From contig NW_021836159.1 of assembly GCF_006345805.1 (NCBI RefSeq), forward strand, positions 1 through 64,000: a stretch of 64,000 nt of DNA. Reading direction: 5' to 3'. The notes beneath the pieces were generated by a model, which searched no databases, was not told the origin of the DNA, and worked only from the letters and a program-made list of their open reading frames with translations. Made by a program: the position numbers and the translations under genes. Below are positions 9,101-12,100 of the stretch, in pieces. The DNA is from Octopus sinensis. Taxonomy: Eukaryota. Positions within the stretch are counted from its first letter, which is position 1. Every line of letters begins with the position of its first letter.

Positions 9101-12100
9101 GGCTGTATATCTTGTTCTACGAAAACTACAGTAGTGATCACATAGAAAAGGGAGAAATCAGAACTGAAAGGTTGCTGTTTACAAATTTTTCTATTTTCCT
9201 TGCGCTGTTGAAAGAGAAGATATGTGGGCAGCAGTTAGATTAGATGCTTTAATACTTCTTGGGGAAGGATAATATTGTGGTATTTCTTAGATTGTGACAG
9301 ACAGATCGCGACAGATTGGAAAGTCTGATAATAATAGCATTTACCTTTTCAGCTCACTATTTATCATATTGCTTCCTCCATGAGGTGTTACATTGGCCAA
9401 CCGAAAAGCACTTCAGATGTTACCGACTTAAATGAAAACTGCTGGCCTTCGTGTCTAAATTAGAAGCGATTATTATAGACTGACTATTGGTTCATTGTTT
9501 TACAGCAAGGTCAGAGTCAGAGGCGATTTACTTGCTCGTGGCTAAATCAATTCCTTTCCCTTATATCACTAATGCTTACGAAACAAGCATGAATATAAGT
9601 GCGTTCGCACTTTCCAAAACTGAGACCTTCTGACAACATAAGAACTAATATTACTGAGTTTCCTGCTGTTATTTACATGTGTTATATAGGCGAAACAACG
9701 ATCGTTCTTCTCTACAAATATATAAAAATCAACGCTATAATAACATAATAAAACATATGTGAAGGTATTCACGATTATATATTAGATTTTCAATAATTTA
9801 TTTGTTTATCAATTAATGTATTGAATATCTTATAATTAATTAATGTATTGAATAATCTATAAATCTGCTACGCTACGGAAACCCACGCGTGTATGCGTGT
9901 GTGTGAGTGTGTGTGTGTGTGTGTGTGTGTGTGTGTGTGTGTGTATGTGCATGTGCGTGTGAGAGAGAGAGAGAGAGAACAACAGAAACAGAGAGAGTGA
10001 AGAAGAGAGAGAGTAAGTATGCGTGTGTTTACGTTTATATTGTCATTGTTCTATCTGATAGTACAAATTTCCAATAATACATACCTTCAAACCTCTGTTT
10101 TCAGAAATTCGTTGTTTCGTTTACTGCAAAAAGCAACAACGAATTAATAGCCGAATACGTTTACCAAAGTGGTTATTATTTACCTCAGAGAAGCGTCGAA
10201 GAAGCCAGGTATAAATTGATAACAACTCGTGGTAGTCAGAATCCTACTACTCAACTGACCTACCAAATTCGAGTAAGTACTTTAACTATCATTGTTGGCC
10301 AGGAATATCTGGGTATTATTCTATGCCACACATCTTAACTGATTTGAGCGTTTATCATTCTGATATGTGATGCTGCAGCAGCCTATTGCTCTGAGCGAAG
10401 AGCACAAATATCCATGGTTAAAAATCCTTGACAATTACTCACATTTCTTGCATTTCTTCTCTGTGTACATATGTATTCTAGGTTATGGGCGCACTCTATC
10501 GTACAGTAGTTCATATGCAGATGGTATTGAAAATACCTGGCATTATTTTTGTGTCCAAACTACACTTTAAAAAATATATATATATTCAAAATCTTTAGAA
10601 ACGCGGAAATGATTCTATGAACGCATAACGAAGCCTAAAATCGAAACCTTACTGCTTTAGTAACTAGCAGCAAACCATACTTATATCAGTGACGTGCCAT
10701 GAATACCAACACGTAGCAATGGGCGAAATACCACTCAGCATTTCGTCCAGCATGCAAACGATTCTGCCAGCTCACCAATTAATAAAAACTCGTACACTAA
10801 AGCCACAAACCTTTATACTTTTAAAACAGTCTGTTTGTGAGCAAAATATCAGAAGTCTTATATAACCATTCTCTTTTCGAATGTCTTAGAATGTCTTTGT
10901 TGTTGTTTTACTTCAGAGTTATTGTAGCCACGGCTATTATGGTCCGAACTGCATAACAAGGTGTGATAACCCCACCAGCGAACAAACGAGGTTTCAGTGT
11001 GATATTAACGGTCAAAAAGTCTGCAAGCCTGGTTTCACTGGTCCATTCTGCAATCCCGATGGTACGTATTTATTATTCCTGTCTCTTTAAATCATGAATT
11101 CAAATCCTGCCTGGATCAGTTCTCCCTTTAGCTTCCTGGGTTCAATAAAATGGGACCATTTTCTACCTAAAAAAATTTCGGCCTTGGATTTTCTATGGGG
11201 TTAGCTAGCACTTCGATTATCTCGAATTTGCTCACTAACACTTTAGATTCCCGGTAATCTAAAACTGAGTCATCGAAAATCAGTCATCCAATCAATTTTT
11301 TACCTCCATAAATACCTTAATTATTCATGACTATTGCATTAATCAAGGATGTATTAACTACTCTTTAAAAAAATGTCTGTCTGAGCTGTGGTCACGACAG
11401 ACGCACGTAATTGCAAGCAAACAGAACATTCCTTGTTATACAGGGCTCCTGCTCCTTACAACAGAAAACTACACTGCTACATAATACCTATTTTCTGCGA
11501 AGAATTAAATGAATGAGAGTTAAATATTTTTGTTATTATTCTCAGTGCAGCACTAGTGATTAATAAATGATGTTGTCACACATTCAACAGCAGACTGACT
11601 CGGTATCGACTCGATTGGCCACAGCTCAATTAAAAGCATATAAATCTCTGTAATTATATATACAAATTCTCTTTTTGTGAGGTTGTAAATACATTGCTGT
11701 TAATGACGTTGATATATGAAGTTGATATATTAATGGTAATAAAGTTGATATATTAATGAAGTTGATTCACTTTCATTTTATCGAATTTCATTATTTAAAT
11801 AAATTGAAAGAAAATATATGCGTAAAAGACATGTATCGTCATTACTTTTTCAGCTGATCCATGTCGCAGTGCTCCGTGTAAAAACAATGCAACTTGTAAT
11901 CGAATGGGCTCTACGTTTCGCTGCTCCTGCCACCCGTTATACACAGGACAATTTTGTATTGAAGGTATTAACTTTTTTCTATTGACTTGTAAACTTTATT
12001 TGTAGGAATTCGAGACACTGTTTAATTGTAATAATCGCGAAACTATCAATGTCTATTTCATTTTAGGTATAATAATGATATTAATTGAATCTATCTCATA

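Follow-up and report, generated by a model that had tools for sequence, protein, structure and literature searches.

The Notch ligands belong to the most highly conserved signalling proteins of animals and their C2-DSL head is regarded as a dedicated Notch-binding device, while a membrane anchor and a cytoplasmic tail are needed for the endocytic pulling on Notch. The canonical Delta, Serrate and Jagged proteins, here represented by the Delta of Octopus vulgaris (CAI9731602.1) and human DLL1, DLL4 and JAG1, contain a signal peptide, a C2/MNNL domain, a DSL domain, EGF repeats and a transmembrane and intracellular region, and the first two EGFs are in general of the DOS type, which DLL4 lacks. 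In Jagged-1 the residues F199, R201, R203, D205 and F207 make up the conserved Notch-binding face of the DSL domain (PMC3415683) and in DLL4 His64 and Tyr65 are the C2 site-1 contact residues, touching the O-fucose of EGF12 (PMC7922208), with site 2 being the more variable of the contact sites among the human ligands according to Suckling et al. (PMC5538765).

Several divergent relatives have been described. Vertebrate DLL3 has a diverged DSL domain, lacks DOS and neither binds nor trans-activates Notch in standard assays (PMC5538765, PMC2504490); it offers the best precedent for losing canonical binding while retaining a DSL scaffold. In C. elegans DSL-1 and its relatives are also without DOS and some are without a membrane anchor (PMC2504490, PMC3415683), and these secreted or divergent proteins signal through LIN-12/Notch (PMC2504490). 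Lineage-specific DSL expansions with non-canonical domains are documented in lophotrochozoans, i.e. the dl-like/DSL-like proteins of Platynereis, mollusc "Delta2" and bivalve tandem-DSL proteins (PMC5356439, PMC8166818), where "DSL-like" sensu Gazave et al. 2017 means a DSL domain together with one or more further conserved domains foreign to Delta/Jagged (PMC5356439). Mollusc "Delta2", present in bivalves, gastropods and cephalopods, has the order MNNL-DSL-EGF and is without a transmembrane region, as it terminates early, close to where that region used to lie; the octopus accessions given for Delta1/Delta2 are XP_014769856.1, XP_014771450.1, XP_029638366.1 and XP_029644317.1 (PMC8166818). 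In a gastropod, DSL/EGF genes confined to molluscs have been found to be radula-specific, and so have many proteins that bind chitin (PMC5995198). The chitin-binding module CBM14 (peritrophin-A) is known from matrix proteins such as insect peritrophins/obstructors, mollusc Pif/BMSP, squid beak proteins and tachycitin, where it is joined to mucin, VWA, LamG or enzyme domains.

In the window, i.e. the whole 64-kb stretch of Octopus sinensis DNA that was analysed, two intact tandem paralogues, gene A and gene B, were identified, both having 10 exons with consensus splice sites, compatible phases and a frame that is open to the stop. The domain order is signal peptide, C2/MNNL, DSL, ordinary EGFs (eight repeats in A and 21 in B), then a linker and a C-terminal CBM14, and Pfam scores above the respective cut-offs were obtained for MNNL (33.8 bits), DSL (39.1 bits), EGF (138.6 bits) and CBM_14 (49.4 bits in A and 52.5 bits in B). 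The exons of gene A are identical to the Octopus sinensis "delta-like protein 1" XP_029657710.1 (P0002), and its EGF number follows from the 48 cysteines between DSL and CBM14. The best explanation of the two genes is that they descend from the Delta/Serrate/LAG-2 ligand family and form an octopod-specific, tandemly duplicated group. Their products are probably neofunctionalised, secreted, chitin-anchored DSL-like matrix proteins and not canonical trans-activating Notch ligands, as judged from sequence. The features of gene A are as follows:

102-158, plus strand: exon 1, signal peptide with the start codon (identical to P0002 residues 1-19, GT donor; the only hydrophobic segment of the protein)
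5085-5274, plus strand: exon 2, first part of C2/MNNL with the motif CARPDD (exact match to P0002 residues 20-83; Pfam MNNL cut-off 22.5 bits)
8029-8111, plus strand: exon 3, middle of C2/MNNL (exact match to P0002, AG/GT sites)
10105-10272, plus strand: exon 4, last part of C2/MNNL (exact match to P0002 residues 111-166; AlphaFold2 pLDDT ~90 in the domain)
10917-11061, plus strand: exon 5, DSL with spacing 8-3-11-7-8 (Pfam DSL; ungapped with DLL4, DLL1, Serrate and Jagged-1)
11854-11964, plus strand: exon 6, EGF1, ordinary (DOS regular expression negative)
12654-12773, plus strand: exon 7, EGF2, ordinary (Cys pattern, splice sites)
14359-15033, plus strand: exon 8, EGF3 to EGF8 (Cys count from DSL to CBM14)
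16134-16151, plus strand: exon 9, micro-exon of 18 nt, linker VPDPQA (exact match to P0002 residues 366-372, AG/GT sites)
17690-17865, plus strand: exon 10, CBM14 (peritrophin-A) and stop (Pfam CBM_14; phmmer match to a chitinase CBM14)

At the micro-exon the annotation of O. vulgaris (P0271) places a different junction. The features of gene B are:

33115-33171, plus strand: exon 1, signal peptide with the start codon (tblastn, splice sites)
35590-35779, plus strand: exon 2, C2/MNNL (homology, splice sites)
41930-42012, plus strand: exon 3, C2/MNNL (homology, splice sites)
44190-44357, plus strand: exon 4, C2/MNNL (homology, splice sites)
45481-45625, plus strand: exon 5, second copy of DSL (Cys regular expression, homology, splice sites)
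46954-47064, plus strand: exon 6, EGF1 (Cys pattern, splice sites)
47959-48078, plus strand: exon 7, EGF2 (Cys pattern, homology, splice sites)
49625-51727, plus strand: exon 8, 19 EGFs (Cys pattern, open frame)
52524-52541, plus strand: exon 9, micro-exon linker (homology, splice sites)
54305-54480, plus strand: exon 10, CBM14 and stop (Pfam CBM_14; frame open to the stop)

Exon 8 of gene B contains a 219-bp tandem array of double-EGF units at 49976-51273 (5.9 copies, 95% matches). Exon 2 of gene B has a duplicate at 34078-34267 that encodes the same peptide.

The region 10917-11061 corresponds to exactly one exon (acceptor ...ttacttcag|AGT, donor GATG|gtacgt), which is translated into 48 residues and encodes the DSL domain. 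A six-frame search of the window for the Cys pattern 8-3-x-x-8 revealed the two DSL exons and one low-complexity false match, the second DSL being located at 45487-45615 within its exon. The assignment as DSL is not due to chance, since the Pfam score (PF01414, E 9e-10) lies well above the cut-off of 24.2 bits and the alignments with the DSL domains of DLL4, DLL1, Serrate and Jagged-1 in phmmer are free of gaps. The original prediction, a DSL domain at these coordinates with the spacing 8-3-11-7-8 in two copies, thus proved exact, and the spacing is identical to that of Jagged-1. It had also proposed that the fold is kept exactly. An AlphaFold2 model of the head has a pLDDT of 82.9. When compared with the PDB using Foldseek the top 24 matches were all N-terminal fragments of Jag1, DLL4, DLL1, Serrate, Delta or Jag2 (E 8e-19 to 2e-13), so that the canonical ligands, in the form of solved C2-DSL heads, are the best structural matches of the family even though the octopus head is only 23-28% identical to them. 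The head appears to preserve the fold of C2-DSL as well as the disulfide framework; the word "exactly" holds for the Cys spacing but is too strong for the fold, which is modelled, and in the last DSL loop the conserved GW.G has become GF.G in the octopus copies.

The surfaces by which canonical ligands hold Notch EGF11-12 were compared as well. In a Cys-anchored, ungapped alignment both copies have R, D, P, S and Q at the positions of Jagged-1 F199, R201, R203, D205 and F207, and the G-H-Y that follows the DSL face is replaced by T-R-F. Over the stretch for which canonical ligands have F-C-R-P-R-D-D-x-F-G-H-Y-x-C, the sequence of both copies includes R-C-D-[N/I]. Arginine at the R203 position was counted in 72, and aspartate at the D205 position in 77, of the ~100 DSL domains scanned (~85 of them from outside the family), and the combination P/S/Q was seen only in the octopus family. 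On the C2 side, the contact motif CLK[H/E]YQ, which includes DLL4 His64/Tyr65, aligns with CARPDD in the octopus family. Judging from the alignments, both contact surfaces, the C2 motif as well as the DSL face with its G-H-Y, are replaced by residues that are conserved within the family, and the earlier claim of a face exchanged at all five positions in both copies agrees with this.

The EGFs downstream of DSL have the spacings 4-5-8-1-8 and 6-5-8-1-8. When the published DOS consensus (PMC2504490) was applied as a regular expression none of the 10 family proteins matched while the six canonical ligands used as control matched directly after DSL; in Pfam, EGF_DL_JAG stayed below its cut-off and was not DSL-adjacent, and JAG1-like_EGF2 was absent. 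That the EGFs are ordinary, lacking Delta/Serrate DOS-type repeats, had been foreseen and was borne out. Calcium binding by EGF2 was considered and rejected (Pfam EGF_CA only 14.9 bits, consensus D-x-D-E-C not followed). A canonical cephalopod Delta carrying the same substitutions was one of the observations named beforehand as speaking against the original prediction. The canonical Delta, which was recovered through an exhaustive search of representative proteins together with cluster look-ups, keeps CLMHYQ, CRVRDDE[L/F]GHYYC and DOS-type EGF1-2 both in Octopus vulgaris (P0222) and in Argonauta hians (P0283), so that this objection does not apply.

From these replacements we infer that canonical Notch binding has been lost and that the head may have a new partner. 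Divergence in sequence is by itself compatible with Notch binding, since nematode DSL ligands are divergent yet active and site 2 is variable, and the proteins could still be Notch ligands or modulators, either by presenting a chitin-anchored DSL with the matrix as the resisting force or by acting as soluble competitive antagonists. The retention of the whole C2-DSL scaffold under purifying selection would fit such a role, as would the O-fucose and O-glucose consensus sites in the EGF repeats of the family, which are found in Notch-pathway proteins, and the secreted DOS-less proteins of C. elegans provide a signalling precedent (PMC2504490). The nematode proteins are genetically shown Notch ligands, but they are short (about one EGF), have no such C2-type head and carry no chitin-binding domain. 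Moreover, not one but both of the structurally defined contact sites are replaced and the DOS pair is absent, and since the canonical Delta of octopods still carries the standard residues, the octopus Notch surface should still be constrained to the standard ligand face. Assayed in the same way, DLL3, whose DSL has diverged, fails to bind Notch (PMC5538765); it differs from the octopus proteins in being transmembrane, largely intracellular and active in cis, whereas these are predicted to be secreted and carry a chitin module, and the two are not orthologues. On balance a remaining role as Notch ligand or modulator is unlikely.

To address the constraint on the different parts of the protein, dN/dS was calculated between gene A and gene B and was found to be 0.29 for C2, 0.31 for DSL and 0.32 for the whole head while it was 0.71-1.0 for EGF2-8 and CBM14. 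The head is thus the most constrained part, with the value for the head resting on few substitutions (18 synonymous, 23 non-synonymous) and the comparison being one of paralogues that may undergo gene conversion. The loop motif R-C-x-x-P-x-x-E-Q-x-R-F-x-C is nearly invariant across paralogues which are ~57-61% identical overall, and because of this near invariance and the low dN/dS of the head the replaced loop is more consistent with a new surface that is maintained than with decay. Pseudogenes were considered and rejected on the basis of intact frames and splice sites, orthologues in three Octopus species and a head dN/dS below 1. The same data bear on a purely structural role, in which the head would be a disulfide-rich cap without any specific partner and only the EGF array and the chitin-binding domain would be functional. 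The rapid change in EGF number (8 versus 21, with the 95%-identical 219-bp array) is typical of structural repeat proteins, and CBM14 proteins are common in matrices, with the family showing a weak match to a chitin-binding beak protein of squid. For a passive cap, however, neither the strongest constraint being in the head nor an almost invariant replaced loop among divergent paralogues would be expected, and we regard this explanation as quite unlikely.

The octopus proteins lack CLK[H/E]YQ, F-C-R-P-R-D-D-x-F-G-H-Y, DOS-type EGF1-2 and the transmembrane/intracellular region and have instead gained CBM14. A hydropathy scan of the protein gave the signal peptide only, with no transmembrane segment, while the control relatives show clear ones, and no exon resembling a cytoplasmic tail was found within the window. 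A Pfam score above 22.1 bits together with the six-Cys pattern C-x13-C-x5-C-x9-C-x12-C-x7-C and conserved aromatics was taken to define CBM14, and the domain of the family, with spacings of 12-5-9-12-7 after the first Cys pair, was assigned accordingly. In phmmer against solved modules it matched a chitinase CBM14 (E 6.7e-12) as well as tachycitin and chitotriosidase, and it shares the six cysteines and the usual aromatics with the known matrix proteins. The AlphaFold2 model of this domain, made from an alignment of 3 sequences, has a pLDDT of only 35.6, and the assignment is based on the Pfam score and the sequence matches to solved modules. The combination of CBM14 with a C2-DSL head was not found among CBM14 matrix proteins, the 88 DSL proteins that are nearest to the family but outside it all lack CBM_14, and literature searches returned no published architecture joining DSL and a chitin-binding domain. 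The presence of CBM14, the lack of a transmembrane segment and the octopod-restricted tandem array were not part of the original prediction. They shift the question from an odd Notch ligand to a secreted protein of the chitin matrix that has a Notch ligand as its ancestor.

That the models are chimeric, fusing a Delta-like gene with an unrelated chitin-binding exon, or that the genes are decaying duplicates, as inconsistent automatic names ("delta-like 1", "jagged-1b-like", "notch homolog 1-like"), some database models that are fragmentary or leave out stretches of exon 8 across junctions other than GT-AG and the duplicated exons at the 5' end of gene B might suggest, is highly improbable given the two open 10-exon frames, the constraint on the head, two independent annotations that join CBM14 to the same protein (all database isoforms end in it) and the position of the CBM14 exon, which in gene A, gene B, O. 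vulgaris and O. bimaculoides alike lies downstream of the EGF exons with order and strand unchanged.

For a secreted, chitin-anchored matrix protein, chitin binding and secretion into a cuticle are what the domain composition predicts. The protein would be secreted and fixed through CBM14 to a chitinous extracellular structure, candidates in octopus being the cuticle of the suckers, the radula, the beak, the lining of the foregut and the stylets. A spacer of variable length could then be provided by the EGF array, by which the constrained C2-DSL head would be held out for a partner other than the canonical site of Notch, possibly a different protein or, through C2, a membrane lipid. A further reading would be a matrix-immobilised DSL ligand with CBM14 on chitin, whose rebuilt head binds to a receptor of the epithelium that secretes the chitin (Notch at a non-canonical site or another receptor with EGF repeats) and for which the cuticle replaces endocytosis as mechanical anchor. 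This is very doubtful, but if true, decisions on cell fate or renewal would depend on the state of a chitinous structure such as sucker lining, radula or beak.

A search among 1.84 billion representative proteins revealed only 5 close relatives, all from octopods, with E-values jumping from 1e-66 to 8e-15 and an Argonauta fragment at E 1e-12; a word-indexed homologue search with the head alone returned 2 proteins only, and one with a bivalve Delta head returned none. Outside octopods no member of the family, a tandem array, was found; it is represented in three Octopus species and, by the fragment, in Argonauta. Gaps in the annotation of other cephalopods may account for part of this absence. 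The O. vulgaris orthologue is 96-98% identical in DNA and the O. bimaculoides locus has the same set of exons, CBM14 included. In a neighbour-joining tree the family forms a clade with 100% support outside the canonical Delta/Jagged group, and the better matches outside the family include bivalve DLLs and, from Platynereis, the delta-like protein P0132. The nearest relatives that have a transmembrane anchor are P0129 and P0180, which come from SRR13259298 and SRR21676486. With DSL and CBM14 the family belongs to the DSL-like class of Gazave et al., but none of the lophotrochozoan Delta-like/DSL-like proteins described carries CBM14. Identity with mollusc "Delta2" appears unlikely from a comparison of accessions, those published for octopus being different from those of the family, and from the lack of close bivalve or gastropod relatives in the representative search. 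Literature searches by accession, automatic gene name or SRA run found nothing on these genes.

The family offers a natural case of a head kept under selection with both of its Notch-contact surfaces rewritten, the membrane anchor dropped and a chitin-binding module gained. If the head does have a new partner it would be an example of the re-use of a receptor-binding scaffold and would supply natural substitutions for probing which DSL residues make a Notch binder. The data also nominate a fast-duplicating, octopod-restricted family as a putative component of chitinous structures (sucker cuticle, radula, beak), and in comparative surveys the automatic names "delta-like", "jagged-like" and "notch-like" given to its members should not be counted as Notch-pathway ligands. 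Microsatellites in the window furthermore dominate an unfiltered self-BLAST.

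Two tandem paralogues, gene A and gene B, lie in a segmental tandem duplication within the window (approximately 1-25.7 kb against 33-60.9 kb) in which introns are 75-94% identical. Both gene models were mapped with database proteins as guides and have consensus splice sites and compatible phases.

Genes and DSL exons in the window
102-17865: gene A, 10 exons, 580 aa
10917-11061, + strand: DSL exon of gene A, a single coding exon, acceptor ttacttcag/AGT and donor GATG/gtacgt, both consensus
33115-54480: gene B, 10 exons, 1056 aa
45481-45625: exon of gene B containing the second DSL copy (45487-45615)

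Every exon of gene A is matched exactly by O. sinensis XP_029657710.1 ("delta-like protein 1 isoform X5"; P0002), and the orthologous region in O. vulgaris (OX597822.1, ~59.96 Mb), which is preceded by a further paralogue, is 96-98% identical. The RefSeq isoform X5 skips 14553-14999 inside exon 8 of gene A, with a junction in a TGCCCA microhomology and without GT-AG, which suggests an artefact of template switching or alignment between EGF repeats, not a real intron. The 5'end of gene B (33029-36412) contains a ~1.5-kb unit of exon 1, intron 1 and exon 2 about 2.3 times (33029-34500 and 34533-36012 being 91% identical, the third copy partial); the ATG has been lost from the extra exon-1 copies (~34615 and ~36127), both exon-2 copies specify one and the same peptide and intron 1 is ~0.9-2.4 kb compared to 4.9 kb in gene A.

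The product of exon 10917-11061 is [49 protein letters not shown]. The Cys spacing 8-3-11-7-8 of the original prediction holds in both copies and, together with a Pfam DSL score of 39.1 bits (cut-off 24.2) and gap-free phmmer alignment with the solved DSL domains of DLL4, DLL1, Serrate, Delta and Jagged-1/2, this rules out a chance match and confirms the DSL observation. Besides the two copies, a six-frame Cys-pattern scan of the whole window gave only a low-complexity artefact; one spurious Cys-rich ORF in microsatellite sequence (38847-38975, - strand) imitates the DSL Cys pattern. Where canonical ligands (human DLL1 and Drosophila Serrate among many) have F-C-R-P-R-D-D-x-F-G-H-[Y/F]-x-C, both copies show R-C-D-[N/I][10 protein letters not shown], and the Notch-binding DSL face is thus replaced as had been proposed. 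Among ~100 DSL domains scanned (~85 from outside the octopod family to which both genes belong) position R203 (Jagged-1 numbering) holds Arg in 72 cases and position D205 holds Asp in 77, while the Pro/Ser/Gln combination is restricted to the octopus family. The last DSL loop reads GF.G in the octopus copies against the conserved GW.G.

An AlphaFold2 model of C2-DSL-EGF1-2 (17-sequence alignment) has a mean pLDDT of 82.9, with ~90 for C2 and ~80 for DSL, and Foldseek places only N-terminal fragments of Jagged-1/2, DLL1, DLL4, Serrate and Delta among its 24 best PDB matches (E 8e-19 to 2e-13). The fold of the Notch-ligand head is therefore predicted to be retained, which agrees with the conserved DSL fold put forward earlier. 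In the DLL4-Notch1 complex site 1 consists of His64, Tyr65 and Thr114 in C2, set against the O-fucose of EGF12, and site 2 of the DSL domain (PMC7922208, PMC5538765). The C2 motif CLK[H/E]YQ, holding the His-Tyr of site 1, aligns with CARPDD in the octopus family. The DOS consensus of Komatsu et al. (PMC2504490), found directly after DSL in 6/6 canonical positive-control ligands, matches none of 10 family proteins, and the Pfam models of the atypical EGF1 and EGF2 give no match above cut-off in the octopus proteins, so the EGFs following DSL are without DOS-type repeats as first described. With CARPDD, the replaced DSL loop and the absent DOS, the head has, judged by its sequence, lost site 1, site 2 and DOS, in a protein that has also lost its membrane anchor.

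The same substitutions in canonical cephalopod Delta would have told against this reading; instead, the canonical Delta of O. vulgaris (CAI9731602.1, P0222) and of Argonauta hians (P0283) keep CLMHYQ, C-R-V-R-D-D-E-[L/F]-G-H-Y-Y-C, GW.G and DOS-type EGF1-2, and the Notch binding surface in octopus is thus presumably still the standard one.

Both proteins consist of a signal peptide, C2/MNNL (Pfam 33.8 bits, cut-off 22.5), DSL, EGFs (8 in gene A and 21 in gene B), a linker encoded by an 18-nt micro-exon and a C-terminal CBM14/peritrophin-A domain (49.4 and 52.5 bits in the two genes, cut-off 22.1). The DSL and ordinary EGFs had been recognised from the start, while the CBM14 tail and the loss of the anchor had been missed. 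The CBM14 domain resembles solved chitin-binding modules, namely chitinase CBM14 (E 6.7e-12), tachycitin and chitotriosidase, and a squid chitin-binding beak protein matches it weakly. Its exon lies downstream of the EGF exons in gene A, gene B, O. vulgaris and O. bimaculoides alike, and two independent annotations join it with the EGF exons in one protein. No hydrophobic segment other than the signal peptide was found in the proteins by a scan in which TM-bearing control relatives were clearly positive, and no TM or tail-like exon was found within the window. In O. bimaculoides (locus L004, CM046609.1, 17.55 Mb; 10001-33032) a 184-aa fragment is annotated, followed by a separate 369-aa gene without recorded domain; since tblastn reveals the same exon series, running as far as a CBM14 exon at 32862-33032, this public model appears to be split. 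Database names of the family genes are automatic and mutually inconsistent.

The dS between genes A and B is ~0.16-0.18, and, although substitution counts are small, constraint on the protein is clearly strongest in the head.

dN/dS between gene A and gene B
C2: 0.29
DSL: 0.31
EGF1: 0.41
EGF2: 1.0
EGF3-8: 0.71
CBM14: 0.71

The new DSL loop, R-C-x-x-P-x-x-E-Q-x-R-F-x-C, is kept across paralogues only ~57-61% identical, and at the sequence level a constrained head with a kept loop points to maintenance of a putative new surface and not to decay. The EGF array changes through gain of repeats, the difference between 8 and 21 EGFs being mostly due to a 219-bp tandem array in exon 8 of gene B (49976-51273, 5.9 copies, 95% identity), the unit of which is a pair of EGF repeats.

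When 1.84 billion representative proteins were searched exhaustively with the head by HMMER, close hits numbered five (E up to 1e-66) and came exclusively from O. sinensis, O. vulgaris or O. bimaculoides, after which E-values jump to 8e-15; an Argonauta hians fragment is 48% identical (E 1e-12). In O. vulgaris at least four paralogues stand in tandem (consecutive accessions CAI9727904 to CAI9727914 and database locus L001). Neighbour-joining of the heads sets the family apart as a clade with 100% support outside the canonical Delta/Jagged group, within which octopod Delta falls, and the nearest neighbours of the family, tentative given the long branches, are three TM-anchored transcriptome proteins (88% bootstrap). 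These proteins (P0180, P0129 and P0140; contigs of SRR21676486, L002, and SRR13259298, L003) combine a C2-like head with a DSL loop that is shortened and non-canonical (e.g. CQSDSMRYTC), carry GF.G or GL.G in place of GW.G, and may represent the membrane-anchored ancestor type. CBM_14 was present in 0/88 of the nearest non-family DSL proteins, in accordance with a local HMM search. The family fits the catch-all "DSL-like" class of Gazave et al., and no description of a C2-DSL-EGF-CBM14 architecture was found in the literature searched. Compared by accession number, the family appears distinct from "Delta2" (PMC8166818), the numbers being different and bivalve or gastropod relatives of the family lacking.

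By descent the family belongs to the DSL superfamily, but it lacks four features by which a canonical activating ligand is defined (site 1, site 2, DOS and TM/ICD). The main rival, a matrix-immobilised or antagonistic Notch ligand, draws on nematode DSL proteins, which are divergent and without DOS and do signal; we consider it unlikely. The non-canonical head originally suggested is partly supported, the sequence evidence against canonical Notch engagement being stronger than first realised, though still inferential. Functionally, DLL3 offers the best precedent of a kept DSL with lost Notch trans-binding, though unlike the octopus family it is a membrane protein. CBM14 matrix proteins would be closest in mode of working, the octopus family adding a re-purposed ligand head. 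We propose that the protein would be secreted and bound to chitin via CBM14, with the EGF array as a putative spacer and the head engaging a target different from the canonical Notch site, possibly a protein partner or a membrane lipid. Ligand C2 domains bind lipids (PMC3888931, PMC5538765), and Notch-pathway genes are markers of chitin-forming chaetal sacs and spicule cells.

A LINE-type non-LTR retrotransposon occupies a GC-rich stretch downstream of gene A (23388-28001, - strand) and a second, degraded copy, split into shorter frames, lies in the GC-rich stretch that follows gene B (58591-60833, - strand). The element contains an endonuclease ORF (Exo_endo_phos, 62.8 bits) and reverse-transcriptase ORFs (RVT_1, 49.9 bits, and zf-RVT), with an ORF1-like frame upstream of these. 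Long impure CA/TG-rich microsatellites are situated at 38200-39900 (GC skew -0.57 at 38-40 kb) and many shorter stretches elsewhere, e.g. 5600-6100, 8750-8900, 22700-23100 and 57900-58300; these tracts swamp an unfiltered self-comparison and yield long spurious Cys-rich ORFs.
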